Shown in pieces: positions 276-41,689 of a stretch of DNA of 64,000 nucleotides (within the stretch, counting starts at the first letter, position 1; each line of letters begins with the position of its first letter). The notes below the pieces were generated by a model. It was given only the letters and a program-made list of their open reading frames with translations. It was not told the origin of the DNA and made no database searches. The DNA is taken from the NCBI RefSeq assembly GCF_011386835.1, contig NC_088800.1, positions 84,072,001-84,136,000 of the forward strand, given 5' to 3'. The translations under genes and the position numbers were made by a program. The stretch is from Chrysemys picta bellii. Taxonomy: Eukaryota.

Positions 276-3200
276 GTAGCGCAGAATCTGGAACAGGTTG
301 GGTGAGATATGCGGAGGGGGACTTGTTGGGGCAAAAAGGTAACGTTGAAGGATGGCTTTTGAGGGGATTGTTTGGGGTTAAACTTTTCAATATTGTCAGT
401 TCAGCAACTAACAAGGACACTTTCCACATCTACAGCACCTTTCCCGCAAAGATCTTAGAGCATATTGCAAACATTAATGAATTAAGTCTCATAACACTCC
501 TAGCTTCATTTCACACTTGGGGACACGAGTGCTCTGAGTGTTTTAGGCCAAATTTTGTAAACTAAACAAATAAATGGCCTGATTCTCAGGGGGCCTGAGC
601 ACTTTTAATTTCTTGGAAGTGTATGAGACCCGTGTGCTCTCGGCACCTCTGAAAAATCAAGCCACCTATGTAGGTGCTGAACTTTGAACACCCAAAGTTT
701 GAAAATTTTGGCCAAAATGGCCCAAAGTCACTCCCTGTATCAGGACCAGGAATAGAAACCGAAAGTCCTGATACCACATCCCCGGCTCTTACCACTCCCT
801 TCCCCTTAAATACAGGTAGGATATTATGATATTGTATCGGATTCAGGAATCAGTTCATAAGAAGTTCAACAAAAAACAAGAGCCATTAAAAATAAAACAC
901 ATGACTAACTCCTGGTGGTGGATTTGGAACCTTAGGAAGGTGTATCAAATCTACCTGCTTACCCACTGGATTTTGAATCAATGTCTGTGAATCCTGCACA
1001 CTTAGTAGATCTTCTTGTACACATTAGCTTCATATCCACTTGAGAAGTGTGTGCACTGAAACAACTCAGACATATGCTGCCTGTCTGCTCACTATATTTT
1101 GTGCTACAAACAGATCTTTGGCACGCTGCCTGAAGACTACCTTCCACTATTAGGAAACATAGCCAGGATGTATACCACAACTGAAATTGCTAACTGGAAT
1201 ATCACTACAGCCGAGACCTTATCAGCCCTATTGACAGGAACATCATGGCAAGAGGATCTCCCAAAGGTAAGACACATGCGAGCAAAACATGACAAGTGCT
1301 GCGAGGACACTAATTAAAAAAAAATAATCAGTGATTAAAAAGTGGACACTGTTGCTGCCTAAATAATGTCACACAAACACACACAGAGTATATTGTGTGC
1401 AGTACTGGACACAGAAATTGTTATTGCCCTGGAAACAGTGATCCTGTTACTTGTCTGGCCCCATCTGGGGAACTGTTTGCAAAGCTAGGGAGGTTATTAG
1501 ATTAGAAATGGTGCAATGTAGGGAAACCAAAATGATATGAGGTCTCCAAGATTCTTGAACGTGAGGTTAAAGGAAACAGTCTTATTCTGATTGGAAAAGA
1601 AGAGGCCACAAAAGGGAATGTTTCAAAAGTATGAACAGATACCAATTAAGTTGATAAAGAAAAGTACACTCTCCTGTTTTAAATGGAGGCTTTAATCAGA
1701 ACATTCAGAAATTAAAAGCCACCATGGATCTCAGACACGGATCTTTCAACCATAGGGTGATAAATATGTGGAATCAGCTATATTGGAATGTGATGGTAGC
1801 AGTGAGTATAAATGGAGGTCAAGAGGCACCTATAAAAATCTGGGAAAAGGGGATTTAAAATACTGGTAGAAAAGCAGAATTGTGGGAATAAACTTGGGAC
1901 CCCAGGCAGACTTTTCTTCGCCTTAAAATGTCTTGTTGATTTAGCACTTAGTACAAAAGAAATATTTTGATGCGATAATGGGTCAGGTGATAGAGAGGAA
2001 CATTATTTTAAATTACTTGAATGGGTGTCAGCAACTGCAATTTTTAAATTAACGTACTTTTTAAACACTCATCGGTTTACCTTAACGGTCATACCTCCAG
2101 GTTACGTCTCTGGTCACTCGGCATCTAGAAGCTAATGGCAATCAGTTAGACGGAACAATGCTCACAATGCTAGCTCCACACATCTGTGCTTTGGAAGATA
2201 CTCAGATAAAAGCCATCAGCAGTGAGGCCGTCAGGTACCTTTTGACTCTTTTAAGCACTAGACACATTCGGGGTAAGTGGGTTCTGTTTCTTTCTTTCTT
2301 CTTTTAATAGCGGATCAAGAAATCTACACTTAGGACTTGCTTCTTTGTAGCTCGGACTGGGCGAGAGCTCAGGAGGATTCGTTGGTGTTGTACAAATTCT
2401 GCTAGTCTCCTTCTGACAGTCACAAGCCCCAGGGTGGGCTCACCAGCAGCTGTTTGGGGAGAGGGAAAAAGGCAGGGCATTATGCAGCCTCTTTCCGGTC
2501 TAGGACCCCAGTTTCTTCTGCTGTGCCATTACACCAGCCCATGCGAGGCAGGGCAATACTGTTCTCCCCATTGTGAAGGGGCACCGACAGTCTGAGTGAC
2601 TTGCCCAAGGTCATACAAGGTGTCTGTGGCAAAGCTGGGAATTAAACCTGGGCCTCCTAAATGCAGGTTAGCGCCCTAACCACGGGGCCAGCCTTCCTCT
2701 CCCGGGGTTTTGGTTTTGTCGGGGTGTATTTCACCGAGCTATGCACATGCTGGTTGCTCAAACCGTTGACAAATACAAAAGGTACATCTCTAAAAACTTC
2801 CTCTCCAGAGAGACCAGCAGGCCCATGAATACCTCGCTGTGTTCTCAGCGCCAGAAGAATCTCTTCTATAGCCAGCTGAGAGCTGCTTACGAGGAGAACC
2901 CGAGTTCTCCAGATGCCTACTACCAGCTGCTGAAGCCTGCCATTGGTGAGTTCCACTGTTGATGCTGGCAGGGCTGAAAGAAGCAGGTTGGCAGTTGCTC
3001 AGTGTGCCCTGTTAGGGGGCTGAGAGACTCCAGCTCGGGCCTTTGCCAGTTGGGGCAGTGTGGGCACGTCTACATAGCAAGGAAAAACCCACAGCGCTGA
3101 GTCTCAGAGCCCGGGGCAATTGACTCCAGTTCGCTGGGCTCTGGAGGGCTAAACATAGCAGCAGAGACGTTCCCACTCAGGCTGCAGACCGGGCTCGAGA

Positions 3201-6200
3201 CCCTCTCCCCTTGCTGGGTTTCAGAGTCCAGGCTCCAGCCCACACCAAAGCGTCTATACTGCTGTTTATAGCCCCACAGCCCAAGTCCTGCGAGTCTATG
3301 TCAGCTGACCTGGGCTCTGAGGCTCAGCACCACAGGTGTTTCTTTGCAGGGTAGCTGTCCCCTGGGGGAGAAGGAAGGAGAGTCTAGCCACTATGGTGAC
3401 CTCTTCAGCCACCTTGAGAGCAGCATTTAGGGGAGGGATGAGATAGGTCAGGCCTTACCACATAAGGACCACTTGTGGAGTGGGGAATAAACAGAAGCTG
3501 GAGGAGGAATACTTGCTGGCTCTGAAAGGAACCACTCCCCCACCTCCTATCACCTGCGCCTCTGGAAAAAAAAATGTGATTAAGAATTGCAGTCAGCAAT
3601 GTGACTGACTACTATCATCATCACAGGCAATTGCATCCGACAGGAAATATAGAGAATATGTCGCCTCTAGGGTGACCAGACAGCAAGTATGAAAAATCAG
3701 GACAGAGGGTGGAGGGTAATAGGAGCCTATACAAGAAAAAGCATCAAATATATAAAATCGGGACATCTGGTCACCCTAGTAGCCTCACATTTTCTTAGGA
3801 GACGGGTCAAATTTTCAGAGTGACTGTGGGAGTTTGGAACACGTAGGCCTGTGTTCATTCACCATGGTGATGTGTGCAAACTAGGCACTTGTGTGGGAAA
3901 ATGGGTTTCTAAGTGCCCATTCAGAAGTGGCTGAGTGTTGTTTATTTGCCTGTAATATATAGGGGCAAGCCTAGATGACCTGGTGTGCCTGTCAGGCCTG
4001 AACCTATATGACTCTATGGTTCAACGACACAAAATGTGATGGGAAGGTTTTGTGGGATCTTGGCAGCTAGACACAGCTTCTGCTTTTCTTCTTTAAAGGC
4101 GGAGCCCCAACCAAGGATCTGATCAAATTTGCTTCTGGTTATCCTGTCATGGACGTAGCCACATTTACAGCCCTCAACCCAGATGAAGTCCAGGTGGGTG
4201 GCGTTTTCCATTGTCAATAGCAATTAATCCATCAGCACTGCCTGCTCTGCCAGTGCTTTTTCCTGGGAGAACAAAAATGTCACTCCTGATCCTGCAGTTT
4301 TTAGGCAAGACTCCCATTGACTACAACAGAAAGACAGTGATTGAAATGAGAATCTTCCCTAGATTTCAGGACTGGGGACTAAGTAGGCCCCATTGTCAGA
4401 TGTGGCTACATAGCAACTGCCAGTCTGGATCAGACCCAAGGTCTATCTAGCCCAGTGTCCTGTCTCCAACAGGGGTCAGCACCAGATGTTTCAGAGGAAG
4501 ATGTACGAACTCCATAGCAGGAAGAGGTGGGGTAGCCTGCCCCGACGTTAGGTCTCGCCCTGCTCTCTAATAGTCAGAGTTAAGCCCTGAAGCATGAAGT
4601 TTAACATCCCTTCCAAAATGTTGTTCTCATTAATGACAGTTCTGGATATTCTTAGCTATATTAATGTCCAACCCCTTTTTAAATCTTGCTCATTTCTTGG
4701 CCTCAAGGACATTCTGGGGTAATGAGCTCCGCTGTCTAATTACACAGTGTATGAAAAAGTATTTCCTTTTCTCTCTCCAGAAGAAAGGAGGGGTTTTTAT
4801 GCCCTCAGTCATTCCCATCATCCTTCTCTAAGCTCCTAGGGTACAGGACCGGCTCCAAGCAGGTGCTTGGGGCAGCAAGTCGGGCTCTTTGGCGGCAATT
4901 CGGCGGCGGGTCCCTCGGTCCCTCTCAGAGGGAAGGACTTGCCGCCGAAGAAGAAGAAAGCGGCGCGGTGGAGCTGCCGCCGATCGCGGCTTTTTTTTTT
5001 TTCCCCTCCTGCCGCTTAGGGCAGCAAAAACCCTGGAGCCGGCCCTGCTAGGGTACCGTGAACCCCTTGCATACTGACATTTTGCAGTCAGCTATCTTTT
5101 TGCTTATCTGGATATACTGTGCACATTGTGTGTATATTGCCATCACCAGAGGATTAGACAAGAACCCCAGTCAGATCTCTTATCTAAACCTGTTAGCTGC
5201 CTTGAGCTGTAGGTACCTTCGTTTGGTTTTAAATTTTAAACCAACAGATTATCTGATCAGTTTTGCATTTAAGTGCAGAAACAATGAAAAATTGCTGTAG
5301 GCAAAAATCAGTCAAGGCATCCTGATGGTTTAATTAACCCACTACATAACTCAGCTCAACGAAGGGTCGAGATTTTGGTGCATTGACAGAGCAGCGTGGT
5401 GGCACAGGAGTGAAGGACAAAACCTACTAAGTCAGAGTAGTCTCCCACACAGGGGGTGCTGCAGGTGTTTTGGTTGTGAGGCGCACTGGAGTAGCAAGGG
5501 GTATTGTAGGGAAGAAGTGAGATGCATTAGCAGATCTGTAGGTAGGAAGCCCAGAACTAGGTTGGGTAGAGGGACATTGGCAGAGCAGAGCAAGAAACCT
5601 TAGCGGATGTTGTCAGTCTGCCATTATGTAACTTTTCTGTAAGCAGCTTGGAATTATTTCACATGAATGTACCTATTTTTATTTCTTTTCGGCTATAGAA
5701 ATTAAGCGCTCAAAATCTGAAAGATTTGCTAGGCGCTAATCTCCCAGAGCTGAACAATTTAGCGGATGACCCTGTGGTGAAATCTTGGACCCAGGCACGC
5801 AACCAATCAGAGGTGAATTCTTTAGGACTCCTTCTTGTAGCAGGACTCCCGGACAAGCCACCTAACGGTTTTATAGATATTCCATCAGGTAAGTGAATTC
5901 ACAACAAAAGAGCCAAGGGTACTGGTGAAATATATGGCTCCAAAAGCTATTCACTAAGCTGTGCCCAATGCTGATAAATAAAAGTGCACCTGTGATGCAG
6001 ATGCATATCACAGGCTTAACTTTCATATAGTTTCACTGTACAAAATCTAAGATTACCCTTAATTGGGACACAACACACATGGGGAAAAATTTAAGATTAA
6101 TTCACCGAAGGCAGATTCTCTCATACATCCAGTTCAGTTTGTGGGGCAGAGTACTAGGTTATGATATGAGAGATGTTAGGTCCTGATCTTGCAATGGGGC

Positions 6201-29006: not shown

Positions 29007-32000
29007 CTGCAAGTGAAAGCGACACCCATTGTGTGCCCCGTGCGTAGCAGCAAAGGGAAGCGAGAAGACTCAAGGCCAGGTTTGGTTTTCTGGGACACCG
29101 GTGGCCATCTGGAGTCTTGTTTTTAGAGACTCCCTTTGGCTTTACACCAGAGTAACAACAGAATCTGGTTGTAGGCTGTCTCCTCCCACCACTCCTCACC
29201 CTGTGGGGAGCAGGGAGCCAATGGGGAGGGTATCTTCCTCCGTTATATCCCTGTAGAGGGCTGGCTAGGAATGAGTTATTCTGGATGGGGAGCTAGGGGG
29301 AGATGAGACCCCACCCCCACCCCATCACCCACCCGATGCTTCTCGTACTGGCGGGAGGGCAAAATTGCCCTTCCCCTGTGAGTCACCAAGTGAAAGGTCT
29401 GTTGCTGGAAGGCAGGAAAAGCAGTAGCATTCCTAGGCCTGGGGAAAGGGCGCTCCCTTGCTTTGTGTGCTTGGCCCAGTGCGGGACAGGGCAATGCTAC
29501 GGGGCGTCTCCGTTCCCGCGGAGCCCGTTGTCCCCTCAAACTCAACTGGGCCTACGAGCAAGGCCCCTAGTGCCCAGGGGGCTGCGGGAGGCATGGAACT
29601 CTACTCACGAGACCCGCAGGAAGGGGTTGTAGTGGAACTCCTCCTGCAGGGTGGAGGGCACCGTGGGCAAGTCCTCGTCGTCTCGGAGCTGGGGAGAAAC
29701 CACAGACTCGTTCAGCGTATGGAGACCGTCCCCAGCACTGAGCTCACGGAGAATACCAGAGGCAGATGCTTAGAGGCTCCTAGACATTATGGGGACAGGC
29801 ACCTTAAACACACAGACCGATTAGAGGGGCAACAAATCTAGCGTTCGCAGAACTCAATGTTCGTTCCAGCCTCCCCTTCCCACAGGGGCTCTCTGCTTCA
29901 GAAGGGGAAACACCTACTTTTGCCCAAGCGAGTTTCTTTTTCACACTCTCGTTCTCCGGTTCCACTTTCAAAGCAAACTTGAGATTCCTCACGGTGTACT
30001 CGTGCCCACAGAACACTTTCTGCAACGCAAATGAGACAATGCACCTTTACGGCCTGCACATCCCCCGGGCGTGGTACCTCCCCACCCAGGATAGCGACTC
30101 TGGAGCAGCGTCCCAGCGGCAGAGACCCCAGGTGAGCTCCGGGGGACTAGCGTTCCCTCCTGTAGAGGAGCCTGGATGTGGAACTCCCTCAGCGAGAGCC
30201 ACAGACTGCTGGTCTTCAGGGTGCAGCGCAGAGCTCCGCTGCTTGGCCACGCGGCTGCTTGACCTTGGGCGGAGATTCTGGAGGGCTCTTCTCTCTGGTG
30301 GGATGGGTGTCCTACCAGGGGAGGATGCATTTAATGCATGTGGTTTGCCCACTGCAATTAATGCCGGGAGAAGCGGCTGCCTGGGGGAGAGCTCTGGGCC
30401 TGATCCCCATAGTCAGAGTGTCTAGGAATGATTTGGGGGGAGCTCTCCGGCCCGTGTTACGCAGGAGGTCAGACGGGATTATCACCGTGGTCCCTCTGAC
30501 CTTGGAATCTATCACTCATGCTGAGGGGACGGTGGGAAGTAGACGCTGGTGGAGGGTTCTGGGCCCAGTCCTCACACTCATGGAGCTGCTGGGGGCGGGG
30601 GGCAGAAGTAGCTGCCTGAGCGGAGCACACATCTCCCTCAGAGCTCATCCCAGTCTCTTGGGGGAGACCTACCGCCTTGGGTCAGGTCTCCACAGTCACA
30701 GAACAGCTCACCCTTGCAGGGGAGCCTGCGGAGGGGTATGTAGCCCTGGACCAACTGGCTGACAGTGAAAAGGCCAGGTCACCTTGGCCCGGAGAGCTTG
30801 TCCTTTAGGCCTACAAGCCCCAGAAATTGGCCAGAGGTGCCCAAAGCACCGAAGCCACCCAGCTACGATCTCACAACATCAAATCCGCGCTGCGGTCATT
30901 CCAGTCACAGAGTGGCATTTGGCCAACGTGTCAAATTGCAAAAGGCTGGTGGCCAGCCAGAGAAAATCCAGGCAGCGCACGTTGCTCAGGCAGATTGAGA
31001 AGTCCGTTGGCACCAACGCGCTGCGGGCATAAAGCTCTGGCCTGCCTGCTCCGAGACACAGAAAGGGAGATGAAGGGAAATCGGGGAGAGGGCCCATGCA
31101 CGCCCTGAAATAGGCGTGACACTCACAGTGTCCTTCGGCAAAGCACCCAGGATTTCAGTCAGGTTCTTGTACATCTGCTCGGCCGTCCCTTCAAAGAACT
31201 TCCCACAGCCACCAATGAACAAGGTGTCACCTGCGCGGAGAAGCACATCACCTTATTTGGGGGAGGGCAGGGAGGTTCTGCCTGCAGGGCAGGCAGGTGG
31301 CATGTGGCCAGGAGCTGATGCCTGGGGGAAGCCCGCCCTACTGTTGTATCTGTGCCGAGGATGAACAGGACTTTACTCCCCGGGGCTGGCAGTCGGGCAC
31401 TTTTTGCTGGTCTAGCGGGCAGGGCACCTATTCCTACCTCTGCCACAGGCTTCCTCTGTGCTCTTGGGCAAGTCACTTAGGCACATAAATACCTCAGAGG
31501 ATCTGGACCTCTGGGCTACAGTTCCCCATCTGCACAATGCGAATAACAGCTCTGCCCTGCCACCGACCCTGCAGGGTTGGGGGCCAGATAAGGGCCTAGA
31601 CAGATATCACTTTAAAGGAAAACAAATCCCGTCTTGTTCAGGCTTACTCTTAAAATGAGGTAGTCCCATGCAGATCGCGGCGGAATCTAAATGATTCTGG
31701 GTAGAATACTAGTCTAACGATAAGTCCCCCCGTAGCTCATTCAAAGAGATCCCAGAGACTGTGAGACTTTTTAGCTCCTGCTGGCTTCTCAAGAAGGTGC
31801 TGAATACCTGAAAAGAGGGCTGGAGCATCTGGGGAGTTCTCTTCCCACATAAAATAACACATGTGGCCTGATGTATGGCACGGCGTGAACAGGCACCTCA
31901 CGTTAATATCTCCGAACTGCAGAGAAAAAGGGGCAATCCAGGTTGGTAAGACACAGGGGATTTCCATTGTTGGTATTATCACCGCACCTAAGGACCCTAC

Positions 32001-35000
32001 TCAAGGACCGGAACCTCACTGGGCGCTGCATAAACACAGAGCAAAGAGATGGTCCCTGCCCCAGAGAGCTTCCAAACAAAGCAATATGGACTTCCCTTCT
32101 TCACGACATGATGCTACAGCAAATTAGTTTATTTCCATCCCAGCCGGGATCTGCTAGCCGATATTTTTCAGAATCATAGAAGTTTAGGGTTGGAAGGGAC
32201 CTCAGGCGGTCATCTAGTCCAACCCCCTGCTCAAAGCAGGACCAATTCCCAACTAAATCATCCCAGCCAGGGCTTTGTCAAGCTGGGCCTTAAAAACCTC
32301 TAAGGATGGAGATTCCACCACCTCTCTAGGTAACCCATTCCAGTGCTTCACCACCCTCCTAGTGAAATAGTGTTTCCTAATATCCAATCTAGACCTCCCC
32401 CACTGCAACTTGAGACCATTACTCCTTGTTCTGTCATCTGCTACCACTGAGAACAGTCTAGATCCATCCTCTTTGGAACCCCCTTTCATGTAGTTGAAGG
32501 CTGCTATCAAATCCCCCCTCACTCTTCTCTTCTACAGACTAAATAACCCCAGTTCCCTCAGCCTCTCCTCGTAAGTCATGTGCCCCAGACCCCTAATCAT
32601 TTTCATTGCCCTCCGCTGGACTCTCTCCAATTTGTCCACATTCTTTCTGTAGTGGGGGGACCAAAACTGGGCACAATACTCCAGGTGTGGCCTCACCAGT
32701 GCCTAATAGAGGGGAATAATCACCTCCCTCAGTCAGCTGGCAATGCTCCTACTAATACACCCCAATATGCCGTTGGCCTTCTCAGCAACAAGGGCACACT
32801 GCTGACTCTCATGCAGCTTCTCGTCCACTGTAATCCCCAGGTCCTTTTCTGCAGAACTGCCCCTTAGCCAGTCAGTCCTCAGCCTGTAGCAGTGCATGGG
32901 ATTCTTCCGTCCTAAGTGCAGGACTCTGCACTTGTCCTTGTTGAACCTCATCAGATTTCTTTTGGCCCAATCCTCCAGTTTGTCTAGGTCCCTCTGAACC
33001 CTATTGCTACCCCTCCAGCGTATCTACCTCTCCCCCCAGCTTAGTGTCATCTGCGAACTTGCTGAGGGTGCAATTAATCCCCGTCACTCACCCTTACCGC
33101 CGATAAAAGTGGGGGGCCATGACCCCTGCCTCCCCCATGTTCTGGCACCCCTGCCCCTCCCTTACCTCAATAACTAGATGACTCCAGATGGAAATGGGGC
33201 AACCAAAAGATAAGTTCCCAAAGACAGACATGTAAGAATATTTTCCACGTTCCCCAGCTGCTAATGTCAAAGATGATGCAGGACAATAAGTGACAATTAT
33301 GCTTTGTATTTATAAGGCATTTTTCCTCTTCCTGGCATTTCACCAACAGGACAAATATTAGCAAATTAAGATTTACAAGAGGCGGAAATTATCCCTGTGT
33401 TACACATGGGGAAATTTAGATTAGGAATTGGTAGTTTCTGGCTCGCAGGCCTATGCTCACATCCACCCCAGAGTACATAAAGCCAGCTATGAAGTTTGTC
33501 CACAGGATCTATTTGAACAAAGACAGGCTGCAAAATTTCTGGCACTTTGTTGACTGGCAATGTTCAGATATAGGAGTTTGGTTCAATCCATTCTAAAGGA
33601 AAGGGTCATTTGTAAAATTCAGATCCGCATTTGGATTTCAAACAGTCCCAGAGCAAAGCTTTCCAGCAGAGGCTATCACATGTGGATTTATTACCATGGG
33701 GAAATGCTACCATCTACTGGCTAGTTGTTCAAAATGAGAATCTACTGCAGAGAAACCTGGCAGCAATATGCCAGGGAAGGTTTTTAATGCTGGATCCTAG
33801 CGCCGCCCCCCTTGCAGTGATCCCATAGATTCCCATGCACACTAGAGCAAAGACAGACCTAAATGAATTAGTAGTTGGTCTCCGGGAGCAACTGACAAGC
33901 AGCAGCTGTAATTTTTAGCTTCCTCACTGTTCCCCCAGCCACAGCAGTGGGTTACACAGCAGGAAAAAACAAAGACATTAAGAGTGTGCGTAGTGGGAGC
34001 ATGGACCGAATCCTTCCTTGGTTACACCCCTACAATCTCATGCACATTCAACCCAGGGCAAGCAAAGGACTCTCTCTGGTCCCTGTTCTCACATTGACTC
34101 ACTGCAGGTCTCTGGGCACATCACTTCCCAGCTCTGTCCTTCACCATCACCCTCAGTAAAACAGGGATCCCAACACCGACCTCCCTGCCAAGGCGCAGGA
34201 CATGTCATTCAATCACGCGTGTAAAGAGCTTTGAGATCCGGGGGGGCGTTAAGCGAGGCAAGAGCAACAACATTAATAATAAACCTCCAGTCTTGTACCT
34301 TTAACTCCTCGTTGTGAGTCACCTTGTGCGTCAAGGCTCCAATCCGCTCATCCGCCCCATACACCTGCAGCTCTGGATACACCTTCGCCAGTTCTTCGTT
34401 TCCTCGGGCATGGTCCCTTCACAGACAGGGAGTGAGATTAGCGTCTCCGCACATCACTCAGCATTTACTGATACCCCAGAGGAAAGAGAAGGGCTAAAAC
34501 GAGTCTCGGGCTCCTGCCTCAATGTTACCCTAGTACTGCGGGGACAGCCCTGGTGTATGTTGCGACACGAAAAATACCGTGACTCAAGATTTCGGAGCAT
34601 GAAAAAGGGCCACCTGACATTCTGAAAAAGGACACAACTTCTCCATATGTGAGCCCAGCAGCCCAATAGAACTGTTCTGCATTCAGGGCCAGATCCTGGG
34701 GAGTGCTGAGAGCGCTCTGCTTCCACCTCGCAGGATCGGGTCCCTTGATATTGCACAGATCACAGTGTGTGGCTGTCACGTCTTACGAGCAGGGATTTCT
34801 GCATAGATCCTCATGCACTCTGATGAGAATACTAAGAACATAAGAATGGCCACACTGGCTCAGACCAAAGGTCCATCGATCTAGCCCAGTGTCTCATCTC
34901 CCGACATTGGCCAATGCCAGGTGCTTCAGAGGGAATGAACAGAACAGGGCAATTATCAAATGATCCATCCCATCGTCCAGTCCTAGCTTTTGGCAGTTCA

Positions 35001-38000
35001 GAGGTTTAGGGCACCTGGAGCATGGGGTTGCGTCCCCAGCCATCTTGGCTAATAGCCATTGACAGACCTATCCTTCACAACAAGTTCCATAGGTTGGCTG
35101 TGTGTTGTGTGAAGAAGTACTTCACTGTGTGTTTTAAACCAGCTGCCTGTTAATTTCATCCGGTGACCCCTGGTTCTTGTGTTACACAAAGGGGTAAACG
35201 ACACTTCCTTAGTCACTGTCTCCCATCATTCATGATTTTATAGACCTCTATCATATCCCCCCCCCTTAGTCATCTCTTTTCTAAGATGAACAGCCGCAGA
35301 CTTTTTAATCTCTCCTCATATGGAAGCTGTTCCATATCCGTAATCATATTTCTTGCCCTTCTCTGTACCTTTTCCATGTCTAACATACAGTAATGTACCC
35401 CTTTACTCTCCACAGCACTTACCAATGGTGATGGGTGGTAAGAATCGCTTTAAGGGTAACGCCTTCTTTTCTGACAATTTCTAGTAACTAAAATGGGGAG
35501 GAAAAAGTCACGTCAAGGAGCATAGTTTTAAAAAAGATTCCAGCTACTAATCTGTGTCAGGAAATTAATCATTAAAGACCCTAAAGACAATCTTGAAAGC
35601 CTTGTTGCTCTCTGAAACATGACTCTGCAAAGCTAGCCTCTCGCAGGGTCTCCCAGTGACTTCAGATTATGTGTGAACAGATCACATTTCAAGAGGCAGC
35701 CCTGCAAACTCACCCTGCGATCGGAATAATACCTGGTGACGGAAAGGCAGCGTAAAAAACATCTGACACACAAAAAGCCACATGTACAAGAAACAAGGTG
35801 CTGCCTCTTGGGATGGATTTTCATGCAACATAGTATTAAATGTTGTCAAATGCTCTTTAATTTATAAATCAGAACCCAGCGTCAGTAGGGGAGTTAAGTG
35901 ATGGATATTTTTGTTATAAGAAAGAGGTAAGCAGAACAGTAGGTCTCTACCTGGCATTTTGAACGTGAGCAAAGAATACTATATCCAGCTCCTGACTGCC
36001 CCCCTCCTAGGAATAAAAAGCCCTTAGTGCATCATGTATCTTCCCATAAACTCTTTCAAGATGTCTTATAGCAAATGTCACAAACTCAGCCCATTTCTGG
36101 TAGGATCTTTAAGCACGATGCCTTCGGGAGTTCCCTAGAACACAGGGGAATCCACTCGGTGATCCCGGACAGATCAGATCGGGGTAACTCACTATACCAC
36201 TGGAAATCCAACTGCAAATACGCCCCTAATTCGAATCCCCCCTCCCAAATATTCCCAGCATTGATATTGGCAGGGATTCCTAACGATCGGGAGATTGTGA
36301 TATTGGCTTCCACTTATGCAAATTGGGCCATAAAGCGCTATTGAACAAGTGTGTTCCCAAAATGTATGCATGACATTTGCATGTGCAATCACCATGACTG
36401 CTCGTGCAATCACAGCACTTCCAGGCACAAATTATGTGCCTGCCTTTTCACATCTGCAAATATGAAAGTCTGGCCTTTGGTTATTTGCATCATTTCGGTC
36501 TGATTAAGAGGCAAACTGTGATCAAAAAGGATGCAGGGCACAAGAAGGGTGCAAGGGGCAACCCAACTGCAGAAGAGAAAAGACTGCCCGGAGGCAGCGA
36601 TGCTATCAGCATGACCACCCCAAAGGTGACGAGGAGGTGAGGCATAGCCCCACTGTCTCCCACCCCAGCCAGCCAGCTCTGGAGAGGAATGCACCTACAC
36701 CCCTTTCAGGGATATAGCAGCAGCCATACTCCCCCACCCTCCCTGGAGGCATCATGCTTCCAGAGCCGATCAGAAATGGAGACAGATCCTCCTCCCTGCC
36801 CAGTGACTGTATTTGATGGCCAGGTTGGCAGTGGATGAAGTCAGTCAGGTGCAAGCTGTGTTGCTATAAACAGATGCTTTTTTCCATGCTGCTAAGTCCA
36901 GTAGCTCCAACCTGCTGCACCATGATTAGCTGCCAGTCCCAAGGGCAGCTAAAGCAGGGAGAGTTGAGCGCAAGACTAACCCCTAGCAAAAAAAAAACCC
37001 CAGAACTCTTCACTGGTTATAGAAACAGAACCAGGCTGCCACTCCGGTGAAAAGGAACCCTAGCAACCCCTCATGCTGCATGAAGCCTCCTGGAAGCTTG
37101 ATGCTATTAGCAAGAAAACACTTCAGAGTTGGCAAGTGGAATGCAATCGCATGGATCATGAGGGAGATGGACAACTATAGACGCGAAATCCTGGGCATCA
37201 GTGAGAGAGGAGTGATAGGTGTGGATAAGAAGTGCGTAGAGCAAGAGGAGACACTTCTCCTTTGCCTAGGGCACAGCAACATCACCACACAGGGAGCAGC
37301 GCTCAATACAACAGATTCTGTGGGGGGGAAAAATCATTCACCAACTACAGTCTATTAACCAATGCAATGTAGACGCCAAACTCCAAACCAGAGGCCTAAA
37401 GATATCAATCAGTGCTCCGCTCCAACAGAGGAACACAGCGATGACGATAAAGAGAAGTTCTACAATTGCCTCTGATGTGTGATCGACAGAATACCTAAAC
37501 GCGACTTTAATGCTAGAGTAGGATGTGATAACCAAGGTATGGAAAGAGCAACAGGGAAGCTGGGAACCCTTAACCAAAATGGCAAGAGACTCATTGAATT
37601 GTGTTTGGTCACCAACCTGGGTCTTGCAAGTAGCCTGGTCCCTCACAAAGACATAGATGAAGACACGTGGAATTTGTCAGATGGCAAAACGAAAAATCAG
37701 ATCGCCCACAACTGCATTAGCCGAAGATGCAGGTAATCTGTCCAAGACCTAAGGGCATACTGAGCAGCAGATGCTCACAGCAACCACAATCTTTGCATTG
37801 CTAAACCGAAATTAAAACAGAGGAAGATCAACTTTAAACAGAAAGTGGTAAAGAAAATCAACAGTACAAAACTGAAAACAAAGAGTCCCATGAGAAATTC
37901 CAGCGTGAACTAAGGAACAGATTGCAGGCACTGACAGAGGCAGAAAAGGTGATACACAGAAAGGGCCTGAAGAAAAATGGGCAGCACTCAGAGACAATGT

Positions 38001-40642
38001 GATTCGAGCTGTTCCAGTCACAGTCAGATAGCAACACAGACAGAGCAAGAACTGGATAAGCCAAGAGACGTGGTGTCTCAGCAAGGAAAGAAAAATAACC
38101 GAAGGAAAACTCCTGAATTCTAAGACAAACAAACTATTGGAAAACGTAAAGGAGGAGTATAAGAAAGCAGACAAAGCAGTGAAAAGCAGCTGAATGAGAG
38201 CGAAACGGAGATACGTTGAAGACCTAGCAGCAGAAGCTGCTGCTATGATGGGAAACCACAGAGCCCACTTACCAAGTGACTAAAACCCTGTGTGGAAATT
38301 TCAAAACAGGACATGGGCCAATAAAAAGCAAAGACAAAAGAAAGCTTACAACTGAGGTAGAACTGAAAAGCAGATAGACCCAGCTCCACTTCAGCATCCG
38401 ATGTTGATGAAATACATGGACCTGATCAACTTGACTTTAACATCAGTCACTAGAGAAATATCAGAAGTGGAGGCTGCAATCACAAAGCTGAAAAGTAACA
38501 AAGCCGCAAGAGATGATCAAATTCCAGCAGAAATGCTAAACGTAGTTGATACCACCATCCTAACGAAACTGACAGAGCTGTTCAACCAAGTTTGGGGAAA
38601 AAAGACCCCTCCTGGCCAGTGGAAACATGGAATCATTGTCAGAATACCCAAAAAGGGTGATCCTACTGATTGTAGCAACTGGAGAGGAGTTGTAGGGAAA
38701 GCCTTCTGCAGTATGAAACTTTCATCACACAGGATGAAAGAGGCCGTGGATGCAAAGATTAGGGAAGGCCAGGCTGGATTCAGGCCCAAGAGATCCTGTG
38801 TAGATCAGATATTCACACTAAGGACCACCATAGAGGAATATGTAGAATGGCAATCTCCCCTCTTCGTCAATTACATTGATTTTCAAAAGCCTGCACAAGA
38901 CTGTGGAATATTCTTCCATCCTACAGAATCCCAGCTGAAGCTGTCAAGATCATCAAGGAAGCGATTTCCCTTGGTACTTGCAGTATTTATCCCTTTAGTG
39001 TAAAGAACGCAGCACACAATGTGGAGCTGTATCAGAGACCCAGACCCTCCAATGAACTCAGCCTGGGTGGAGCTCTGTACTACTGGGGTTCTGCATTGGA
39101 GCAAGGATCAGCCCACCTGGAGCTCAATGCAGAATGGAGGCTTCTGTTATCAGAGGGTGCATCTGCACGGCTACAAAAGACCTGTGGCACAGCCACCCTG
39201 ACTCAGCTGACTTGGGTTAGCAGGGCTCTGGCTGCGGGGCTAAAAATTGCAATGTAGATGTCCAGACTTGGGCTGGAGCCCGGGCTCGGAGACCCTACGA
39301 GGGGGGAGGGTCCCAGAGCCCAGGCTCCAGCCTGAGCCCAAACGTCTACTCTGCAATTTTTAGTCCCACAGCCCAAGCCAATTGACCCAGGCTCTGACAC
39401 TTGGTGCCCCAGGTTTTTTATTACCATGTTGATAAGAATGGATCCCCAACATTTCCATCTCGTCATTAATGCTGCTTGTTTCCTTTTGTGCCTCAAAAGC
39501 TCACAAATCACAAGTCAGGCCTCAAAAATCATGAGATGATTTTTAAAAATGGATCCTTTTTAAGCCAATTAAAAACAATTAATAATTTAAAAACTAATTT
39601 GGGATTTTTCTCTTTGCCTCCTGGTTTGTGAGACTCTAGGGTCATTTTTTCAAGCTCTTCCCCAAACCATGAAGAGGACTAGAAGCTTTCATTTAAAAAA
39701 CAATTAAGCTGAAATTCTCATATAATGATATGACTCCAGCAGCATCACTCCAAAAACCTAGTCTTGCCAGGCCCATAATAAAAATCACCAGAGTTGGCAA
39801 CACTGCATTTTGGATAATGAAACAGGCCAGTTTCACATTTGTTTCTAGTCAGTTTCATTTTCTGTCCTCTCCACTAGCACAAGACTGTTTTTGTGTTTGG
39901 GTGTCCAGCACTGCAAGGCAAAGTGTGAATCAAGAAAAACAAAACAAAAACATTTTCACTACAATTTAAAAAAAATAATAATAATTTAAGGCACTTCTGT
40001 TTGTTTTAGGTTGTGTAACACCTTTTTTGAGCTTTTCCCCTAAAAACAATATAAATTTTGGGCCTACGCCATAGTCCAATGTCATTTTACAACACACAGT
40101 TGCAGTCCCAGAGTCCATCCTGCAGACCCTCACTGAGTAACTTTTAAACCTGCAAACAAACAGAGAAGCATTTACAAGATTGGGCCTCGTTTGTACAGCA
40201 CCTGGCACAACGGGACCCAATGAGACTGGGAACTTTAGACACTATCGCGATATACACGTTTAATAAATACAATTGTTTCTTGTTTTTCCTGATCATAACT
40301 TTCCACTGAGCTCAGCCCTGATGCAGACATCCCACCTGGACTAACTAACTCCTATAGCTCTTATTTTGTGTGTCACTATGTGCTCCTAGTGGAAGCGAAA
40401 TTAACACAACTCTAACCATTCCCAGAGCTCTAGATTCCTTCCTTTAGTATCTACAAACAAGCCAGCCTGCTCTGAACAACGATCTTGAGCCAGGACCAGA
40501 TGTCCTTTAATTTCAAGGCTTTAAGTAGCAAAATTACCCTCTTGGGAACAGCTGCGTCCACTACAACTGCTTCCTTGGTGTTTTCTTCAATGACCAAGTA
40601 CATGTAGTTATCTTCCAAGACTGAAATCACTTTGACCTTCAT
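28841..40642 (-). CDS. HAGHL: Hydroxyacylglutathione hydrolase-like protein, 282 aa; complement join(40538..40642,35423..35487,34299..34416,31808..31916,31127..31230,29918..30019,29609..29688,28841..29006)
   Basis: 849 nt = 282 aa + stop. Start [27 protein letters not shown] motif, C-terminal extension [10 protein letters not shown] typical of HAGHL. Tail-to-tail with CIAO3 as in human. Confidence 0.95.
29609..29688 (-). CDS. HAGHL: HAGHL coding exon 7 ([14 protein letters not shown]...YNPFLRVS)
   Basis: CCCCAG|CTC and CTC|GTGAGT; 80 nt. Confidence 0.95.
29918..30019 (-). CDS. HAGHL: HAGHL coding exon 6 (KVFCGHEYT...LAWAK)
   Basis: TTGCAG|AAA and AAA|GTAGGT; 102 nt. Confidence 0.95.
31127..31230 (-). 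CDS. HAGHL: HAGHL coding exon 5 ([14 protein letters not shown]...LPKDT)
   Basis: CGCAG|GT and ACT|GTGAGT; 104 nt. Confidence 0.95.
31808..31916 (-). CDS. HAGHL: HAGHL coding exon 4 ([18 protein letters not shown]...ALFSG)
   Basis: CTGCAG|TTC and CAG|GTATTC; 109 nt. Confidence 0.95.
32169..33075 (-). mobile_element. CR1 LINE, 5'-truncated
   Basis: Same CR1 ORF2 peptides on the minus strand (ORFs 32253..32522, 32733..32951); CATAGAAT-type tail at the left end. Confidence 0.95.
34299..34416 (-). CDS. HAGHL: HAGHL coding exon 3 (DHARGNEEL...THNEELK)
   Basis: GTGAAG|G and AAG|GTACAA; 118 nt. Confidence 0.93.
34833..35385 (-). mobile_element. Older CR1-family LINE 3' fragment
   Basis: Begins TAAGAACATAAGAATGGCC..CAGACCAAAGGTCC..CTAGCCCAGT; related to the copy at 4395-4740. 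Confidence 0.7.
35423..35487 (-). CDS. HAGHL: HAGHL coding exon 2 ([22 protein letters not shown])
   Basis: ATTTTAG|TTA and TTG|GTAAGT; 65 nt. Confidence 0.95.
36740..38990 (+). mobile_element. RTE-clade non-LTR retrotransposon (SR3/Perere-3-like), decayed; keeps 5' UTR, AP endonuclease and the N-terminal part of RT
   Basis: Fragments [92 protein letters not shown], with stops and frameshifts. Confidence 0.9.
36897..36970 (+). ncRNA. Degenerate twister-like (type P1) ribozyme relic in an RTE 5' UTR
   Basis: Ordered blocks UAG-CUCC, CCU-[GCUG/UAGC]-UGCC, AGUCCCAAG, UAAAG.AGG.AG.GUUG parallel the twister P1 consensus as recalled. Confidence 0.5.
39150..39420. mobile_element. PIF/Harbinger-like MITE (same family as 3062)
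   Basis: Shares GGGCTC..GAGACCCT, CCCAGGCTCCAGCC, CCCACAGCCCAAG, CAGGCTCTGA blocks. Confidence 0.6.
40538..40642 (-). CDS. HAGHL: HAGHL coding exon 1 (MKVKVISV...AAVPKR)
   Basis: ATG at 40642; donor AGG|GTAATT; upstream acceptors at 40673 and 40660. Confidence 0.95.
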
Positions 40643-41689
40643 AGTCCCAGGGTTGTGAAGCTACACAGGTGAGCTGTAAGGGAAATTACATTATTTTAGA
40701 ACCATCCCATACGATTAAAAAAAAAATCAATCCAGCAGCATCAGAAATATTTAGAACAAGGTCCCGGGCAGAGAGCACCACCATAACAGCTCCAAGTCCC
40801 AACCCTCCTGCGTCTATTTGCACAGACTCCACCTGTGGCAAACAAGCCCAGGGCCGTGACTTACTGGAACAGGTGCAACTCTACTATGAAAAACAGCCTT
40901 TCGCCTCTTGGCCTGCTCTCCTCTCCTCGCCTAGTCAGAAGTAAATCCACAACACTGTGGCAACACAAGCCCAGCCTCAATGCACTAGCTAACAGTTCCC
41001 ATTAAGCGCATCTCATGTTTAATTCACTGGTTTAGCTCCAATTTGGGCTTTCTGGGGATTGTGAACATCCAAACTGCTGCACACAAATGCCTCAGGACTC
41101 AGAAAACTGTTCAGCGTGGAAGGATCAGTCTAGTTTGGTTGAAGGCAGGGGGAGTCAGAGGGAGGCCAGGGGCCAAAGCCGGACTGCCAGATGCTTTTGA
41201 ATGGACCCTGAAATCTTTTTATTTACTTACTATCATTACTTGGGGGGGGGGGGGTAATTATTTTCTCTGGGGTCTGGACCTTGACCAAGAAATTTGGACT
41301 TTGACAAAAACTCATTGGCTACACCTGGTTGAAGGTCTCAGTTTAGAGCTGAGAGTTGCAGCCACTCCTAATACCCCTGTTCCCAGAAGGGGACCCGGGC
41401 GAGCTGGAAATGAGTTCCCAGAATCCAGGGTGGGAGAATTAATTATCACATGGCAGCCCCCAGCCCACGCGCAAAGCATCCCCTCCGTGTGAACCCCCCA
41501 CCCCACACACCCCCAAACCCAGGTGCAAATCGCCCCCCACCAATGTGAAAATCCCCAGGGCCCCCACATGCCGACCACCTCCTCCACCCATGTGCAAATT
41601 AATCAGCTGTCTGCTAGTGTCATCCCCCCTGCCCAGGTGCACCCCCTTTCACACGCGTGTGCAACAATCACCCGGACCCCCCCCCCCGT

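Follow-up and report, generated by a model that had tools for sequence, protein, structure and literature searches.

Nucleotides 36902-36967 on the plus strand of a 64,000-nucleotide (nt) stretch of Chrysemys picta bellii DNA (contig NC_088800.1, positions 84,072,001 to 84,136,000; the whole stretch is hereafter called the window) are very probably the decayed remnant of a type-P1 twister ribozyme, which would once have made up the first ~65 nt of a non-long terminal repeat (non-LTR) retrotransposon of the RTE clade. This reading, put forward in a preliminary description made from the letters of the sequence, is now supported by the finding that related RTE elements carry bona fide twisters at the same place, and that the 5' untranslated region (UTR) of the turtle copy is collinear with theirs. 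The twister-like blocks quoted in that description were all recovered on the plus strand, at 36898-36967, the start given for them (36897) being one T too early. A descriptor of the twister 3' half, in which GTCCCAAG (up to one mismatch allowed) is followed by TAAA and next by GAGRG, had a single match on the two strands of the 64-kb window, and this match fell at the locus.

The motif and its host element

Parsing of the motif into twister blocks, together with the comparison of the downstream sequence with other RTE elements, gave the following features, P and L designating the stems and loops of the twister fold and ORF an open reading frame.

36898-36901, plus strand: CCAG, flank that would provide the P1 5' strand, from block parsing against homologues; 3 of 4 positions are able to pair with UUGA at 36964-36967
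36902-36904, plus strand: loop L1, UAG in place of UAA, aligned with the UAA-CUCC of the related elements L067 and L069
36905-36911, plus strand: P2 5' strand CUCC (36905-36908), then L2 AAC (36909-36911) replacing GC, from block parsing
36912-36932, plus strand: P3 hairpin CUGCUG...UAGCUG with a 9-nt loop, an optional auxiliary stem, from the sequence and the block table
36933-36948, plus strand: P4 CCAG/GCAG around loop L4 UCCCAAGG, from block parsing
36949-36967, plus strand: CUAAA junction, P2 3' strand GCAG, extra G (36958), L1 3' strand GAGAG (formerly GAGGG) and P1 3' strand UUGA (formerly UUGG)
36968-37072, plus strand: rest of the RTE 5' UTR, including an A-run (36987-36996) and a conserved AUAGAAACA block (~37019-37027), collinear with fish RTE 5' UTRs
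37073-38990, plus strand: decayed RTE ORF, endonuclease (EN) then reverse transcriptase (RT), from tblastn with P0016, P0038, P0169, P0170, P0285 and others, phmmer, and a weak Pfam RVT_1 match

The tblastn comparison with full-length RTE proteins placed the start of the ORF at an ATG at 37073 or 37080, the EN at 37074-37883 and the RT at 37912-38990, all on the plus strand. The motif ends ~106-113 nt 5' of the ORF start and on the same strand, so that its placement upstream of the RTE coding region holds. When set against full-length EN-RT proteins with Exo_endo_phos and RVT_1, the turtle copy was found to have the organisation of the RTE clade, namely a single ORF with an N-terminal apurinic/apyrimidinic-type endonuclease followed by the RT. 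The ORF is interrupted by at least 8 in-frame stops, in addition to frame changes, and nothing recognisable is left of its last ~310 codons and of the 3' UTR. A weak RVT_1 match was all that Pfam returned for the ORF pieces, a protein search with the N-terminal piece of the EN yielded no candidate, and self-BLAST revealed no second RTE copy in the window.

A turtle host is borne out by FAHD1 in the window, which shares 96% identity with the Gopherus evgoodei cluster and 91% with Carettochelys. The same insertion, together with its flanks, was present in contigs from at least four coded turtle taxa, two of which span all 801 nt and show 17 and 24 substitutions; it is therefore older than the split between these taxa. 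Within the 74-nt motif, 1-2 differences were seen among the turtle taxa (36945 G>C in two, 36969 C>T in one). Since this count equals the expectation from the flanking rate, there is no sign of constraint, and the RTE copy has drifted neutrally since its insertion. The stretch of ten A at 36987-36996 also varies in length among the turtle taxa, by 8 additional A in one run and by one A fewer in another.

Homology with the twisters of related RTE elements

A phmmer search with a 200-amino acid (aa) piece of the turtle RT returned 16,025 matches, the best named of which came from fishes, snails, and aquatic metagenomes; a catfish RT (P0014, 51% identity) ranked within the best 15 of these 16,025 matches. 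In the blue catfish locus L009, a twister-P1 match of 41.7 bits (E 9.6e-6) lies upstream of an intact RTE ORF of 981 aa (31818-34760). L010, a decayed relative from a different NCBI assembly, gave a twister-P1 score of 34.8 bits, while three loci fetched via proteins 70-98% identical to the catfish ORF scored 61.3 bits (L067; E 5.7e-12), 46.2 bits (L069), and 40.8 bits (L070). In all five relatives the twister lies on the ORF strand, with ~110-120 nt from its end to the ATG, as in the turtle, and several of these twister-bearing elements keep intact ORFs of 981-995 aa. No twister was found in seven full-length relatives (L001-L007; ~45% RT identity), nor in 20 more distant metagenomic RTE loci, and a strict regular expression run over all loci matched L009 only. 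The twister is a feature of particular RTE lineages, and not of RTEs in general.

The turtle motif was compared with the ribozyme and UTR segments of these natural copies by means of Rfam alignments, a coordinate-defined block alignment, and nhmmer, since MAFFT misaligned the twisters around the optional P3. In L067 the blocks read UAA, CUCC, GC, P3, CCAG, UCCCAAGC, CUGG, AUGAA, GGAG, GAGGG and UUGG, and in the turtle UAG, CUCC, AAC, P3, CCAG, UCCCAAGG, GCAG, CUAAA, GCAG, an extra G, GAGAG and UUGA. The turtle core is identical to those of L067 and L069 at 28-30 of 36 positions, among them the non-universal P2 CUCC and 3' UUG, and the same CUCC occurs in the catfish elements and in Schistosoma mansoni twisters. 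The turtle blocks also match the S. mansoni twisters tabulated in PMC8501958, including P2 and the UUGG-type 3' strand, two features that twisters do not all share. A nhmmer profile built from five non-turtle 5' UTRs had a unique match in the window, at 36930-37027 (E 0.0038-0.0049), that runs from the twister 3' half, the 36949-36967 part included, through the downstream UTR to the shared AUAGAAACA block. Among the relatives, moreover, P2 and P4 covary (P2 CUCC/GGAG versus CCCA/UGGG; P4 CCGG/CCGG versus CCAG/CUGG), in the way that a genuine twister fold predicts. On the minus strand, GGAGGGTTGGG is partially matched at 40794-40815; as no twister core stands upstream of it, this match was put down to chance.

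The Rfam twister-P1 model, proposed earlier as a check on the locus, matched it weakly. When 126 nt were scanned, twister-P1 (RF03160) was the sole family matched, at 36904-36969, but with 13.6 bits and an E value of 2.1, far under the gathering score of 67.2; a scan of 2 kb at E values up to 10 returned no twister, and no Rfam family reached its gathering score in the whole 64-kb window. Rescaled for twister-P1 alone, the E value becomes ~5e-4 in 126 nt and ~0.25 per 64-kb window. By itself, the motif is suggestive and not significant, that is, not beyond chance. The convincing relatives likewise remain below the 67.2 threshold (34.8-61.3 bits); decayed ribozyme relics score far under the Rfam thresholds and are recognisable only via their mobile-element context. 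As to the register, the shifted one chosen by Rfam (P1 GCUC/GAGC, P2 CCUG/CAGG) was not accepted as the historical one, since it is with the UAA-CUCC of the homologues that the turtle UAG-CUCC aligns. The block register of the preliminary description is the homology-based, historical one, as judged from six sequences parsed into twister blocks.

Several observations count against assigning the motif to a twister at the 5' end of the RTE copy. The Rfam match alone lacks significance, and its optimal alignment lies in a different register from the homology-based one; a sequence profile restricted to the twister gives just E 0.2; no credible direct repeat or target-site duplication flanks the element, the 3' end of the copy being missing; no turtle paralogue over the ribozyme segment was recovered from four runs at a likeness of at least 80%, the pieces covering 37009-37235 only; the turtle protein is too decayed to be placed in the RTE tree, where its branch amounts to 2.3 changes per site; and, as regards the predicted inactivity discussed below, natural twisters tolerate many imperfections (PMC11662667).

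The first two kinds of score, together with the 27 other RTE relatives lacking a twister, could be taken to mean that a GUCCCAAG...UAAA...GAGAG string happens to stand upstream of the RTE copy by chance, without twister ancestry. However, the full 5' UTR profile, which was built without the turtle, matches here only (E 0.004), and does so over collinear conserved blocks that extend beyond the ribozyme; strand and distance to the ATG agree with those of the twister-bearing relatives; and the 28-30 identical core positions include parts that are variable among twisters generally. Profile match, core identity, strand, and spacing to the ATG thus make a chance resemblance very unlikely, and this explanation is already largely refuted.

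It is also very improbable that the motif lies outside the RTE, with the element beginning at or after the A-run (~36997-37009) and the 100 nt upstream being other old sequence. This would be in line with the paralogous contig pieces recruited at a likeness of 80% or more from the four turtle runs, which begin at 37009, with none over 36897-37000, and whose sequence before 37010 is A/C-rich. Against it, the fish 5' UTRs align through the A-run into the twister 3' half as one match, non-LTR copies are mostly 5'-truncated, and a length-variable, low-complexity A-run stops local alignments. With the motif taken as the 5' end of the element, the membership of the ribozyme in the turtle family rests on collinearity with the fish elements, since none of the paralogues recovered extends over it.

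The multi-copy stretch itself (37009-37235) takes in the final ~65 nt of the 5' UTR plus ~55 codons at the start of the ORF, with up to ~15 contigs at 37167-37193. At 37093-37154, where this copy has 60 nt, some paralogues have 103. The stretch may represent a derivative family of higher copy number, or be no more than the segment that is conserved best.

Predicted loss of ribozyme activity and proposed mechanism

In the turtle copy, loop L1 reads UAG and not UAA, so that the general-acid A is kept and A2 is a G. Each of the two pseudoknots contains one mismatch, the GC:GC pseudoknot having 1 of 2 pairs left and the CCC:GGG pseudoknot 2 of 3, with a C.A mismatch in the middle. P2 keeps 3 of 4 pairs (one C.C mismatch), P4 has 2-3 mismatches (1 of 4 pairs is standard in this copy, against 2 of 4 in turtle taxa B and E, where 36945 is C), and one G has been inserted. 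The L4 core GUCCCAAG is intact and the last L4 base is G instead of C; the conserved L4 loop GUCCCAAGC is represented by GUCCCAAGG at 36936-36944, in agreement at 8 of 9 positions. Among the CG>CA differences formerly ascribed to CpG decay, the A of the P4 5' strand (CCAG) may be ancestral, as it is also found in L067 and L010 with U as its partner.

High-throughput analysis of ~2,600 natural twisters has shown that stem defects are tolerated, that mutation of A2 nearly abolishes cleavage, and that an imperfect first pseudoknot (PK1) together with an imperfect second one (PK2) is not tolerated (PMC11662667). The minimum free energy fold of the motif RNA is a long hairpin of another kind, in which UAAA is sequestered (-28.3 kcal/mol, z -3). 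It contains a 9-bp hairpin around a AGUCCCAAG loop, which bears out the AGCUGCC/GGCAGCU palindrome noticed earlier; the palindrome-completing G at 36945 is lineage-specific, two other turtle taxa having C. Given the A2 to G change, the imperfect pseudoknots, and the alternative fold, no self-cleavage is predicted. These defects (PMC11662667) and the 13.6-bit score uphold the former statement that the copy is probably dead. Judged from its sequence, the relic is almost certainly inactive, and it is likely to be a molecular fossil without present function.

A tolerant or re-registered twister variant that still cleaves itself, possibly co-opted by the host, appears most doubtful. It would be favoured by the retention of the general-acid A36903 and of G36959, the first nucleotide of the GAGAG strand, by the perfect 4-bp P1 and P2 obtained in the shifted register of Rfam, and by a fold more stable than that of shuffled sequences. 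We take G36959 to be the putative general base by its position in the numbering of PMC11662667. The tolerance of natural twisters, which extends to many imperfections of P1, P2 and P4, would work in the same direction (PMC11662667). On the other hand, A2 is the position at which mutations nearly lose activity, the combination of two imperfect pseudoknots is of the kind not tolerated, UAAA is held in the alternative 9-bp hairpin, and the motif is not conserved in excess of its flanks among the turtle taxa. In addition, an exon 1-like ORF of HAGHL is located at 40451-40642 on the minus strand, and the RTE copy and the motif are on the opposite strand.

The use of 5' twisters by the schistosome RTE element Perere-3, which the preliminary description had cited as established, is documented: its 5' twister variants cut themselves both in vitro and in cells, a downstream reporter needs the cleavage in order to be translated, the ribozyme is transcribed along with the element, target-site duplications adjoin the cleavage site, and the P1 5' strand is supplied by the target site or new flank (PMC8501958). 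By analogy with Perere-3, the active ancestor of the turtle copy would have been transcribed together with upstream host sequence, and its twister would have cut itself at the U-A step, here 36902/36903; we infer that the ancestral cleavage site lay between U36902 and A36903. If the RNA began at this site, the CCAG flank (36898-36901) would fall outside the element. The released RNA would have carried the ribozyme body first, then ~105 nt of UTR, then the EN-RT ORF, and may have acted both as messenger for translation and as template for target-primed reverse transcription, so that each new copy would have had the ribozyme at its exact 5' end. The present copy inserted before the sampled turtle taxa diverged, and then drifted.

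Relation to known systems and further observations

Like the T-variant twisters of Perere-3 in S. mansoni (Liu et al. 2021, PMC8501958), the turtle motif is best read as a type-P1 twister opening an EN-RT RTE element on the coding strand. The likeness extends to P2 CUCC/GGAG (in the intact relatives), L4 GUCCCAAG, GAGGG, and a UUGG-type P1 3' strand, and also to P3, which in the turtle has 5 pairs and a U.U at the second position, like the P3 of S. mansoni. Unlike Perere-3, the turtle copy is mutated at ~10 core positions and predicted to be inactive, shows no visible target-site duplication, and resides in an amniote host. With the fish RTEs (L009, L069 and L070 of blue catfish, L067, and L010) it shares the ORF organisation and a 5' UTR ordered as twister, UUGRGCG... 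segment, AUAGAAACA block, and ATG; the fish elements, in contrast to the turtle copy, score 35-61 bits on RF03160, include several intact ORFs, and keep a post-twister and a start-codon hairpin. With respect to the RF03160 model, the turtle retains the L4 core, UAAA, and part of GAGGG, whereas A2, PK1, PK2, P2, and P4 are defective. Ribozymes resembling that of hepatitis delta virus (HDV), found at the 5' ends of R2 and other non-LTR elements, have the same 5'-processing role with a different fold (PMC8501958); no HDV-like match was obtained at the turtle locus in the 2-kb and 126-nt Rfam scans.

In the RTE tree, the fish twister elements cluster together, and the Schistosoma RTEs are placed elsewhere, grouped with snail elements. 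The P2 CUCC/GGAG and the UUGG are shared, yet the fish and schistosome RTs belong to different RTE subclades, and the lineages between them have HDV-like, tRNA-like, or no recognisable 5' modules. A shared twister module would be either ancestral with many replacements, or moved between lineages. That the turtle relic, the fish elements, and Perere-3 share one inherited module, exchanged among RTE lineages or passed by horizontal transfer between aquatic hosts and their parasites, is a speculative proposal that we regard as rather unlikely; if it were true, twister-processed RTEs would constitute a vertebrate-wide, partly still active class, and not a schistosome peculiarity.

Fish and reptile twisters have already been reported as predicted, some being active in vitro (PMC11662667), so that an amniote twister, presented earlier as possibly without a characterised turtle precedent, is not new in itself. 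In the literature examined, twisters are tied to retrotransposition in S. mansoni only, those of fishes and reptiles being given without genomic context (PMC8501958, PMC11662667), and a search for turtle or vertebrate non-LTR twisters found no RTE link, the species lists supplementing two twister papers not being covered. Linking vertebrate twisters to RTEs extends a known mechanism modestly, and the link may explain many vertebrate twister matches. The locus would mark that a lineage which colonised turtles likewise used the Perere-3 strategy, in which a twister defines the 5' end of the RTE RNA; that RTE lineage persists, with good twisters and intact ORFs, in catfish and related elements.

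A number of minor observations were made on the 5' regions of the relatives. In two copies of the catfish family, GAU takes the place of the expected UAA (L009:31660-31662 and L070:40-42), while L069:52-54 has UAA; the GAU copies resemble the 0A T-variants of Perere-3, described as inactive, and the L009 ORF is nonetheless intact. Right after the twister 3' strand, a 9-bp hairpin (GGG.NNNNGG ... CCNNNNCCC) is found at L067:144-169, L069:101-126, L009:31709-31734, and L010:404-429, with 3 of its 9 pairs changed on both sides and pairing kept; it is degenerate in the turtle, at 36966-36986. A second conserved hairpin, at the start codon (AUGACGG...), is located at L067:251-310, L069:201-266, and L070:189-254, and has been lost in the turtle. 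In Rfam it resembles SECIS_1 (32.1, 27.2, and 27.2 bits, respectively; gathering score 35), and comparison of L067, the catfish elements, and L010 reveals compensatory changes in it; in this RTE lineage it may serve as a structured element for translation start or protein binding.

As for other 5' modules, L005:1-68 and L006:5-76 are tRNA-like 5' heads scoring 39 and 45 bits, and a candidate HDV-like ribozyme (28.4 bits, E 0.11) is found at L001:436-507, 165 nt upstream of the ORF. L068, the closest tree relative of the fish twister clade, has no recognisable ribozyme.

Finally, ~200 nt past the end of the RTE homology, the window contains a ~230-nt internally palindromic repeat (39203-39432). 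A ~70% identical copy of this repeat is present at 3069-3308, in both orientations, and the two probably belong to a separate small inverted-repeat element.

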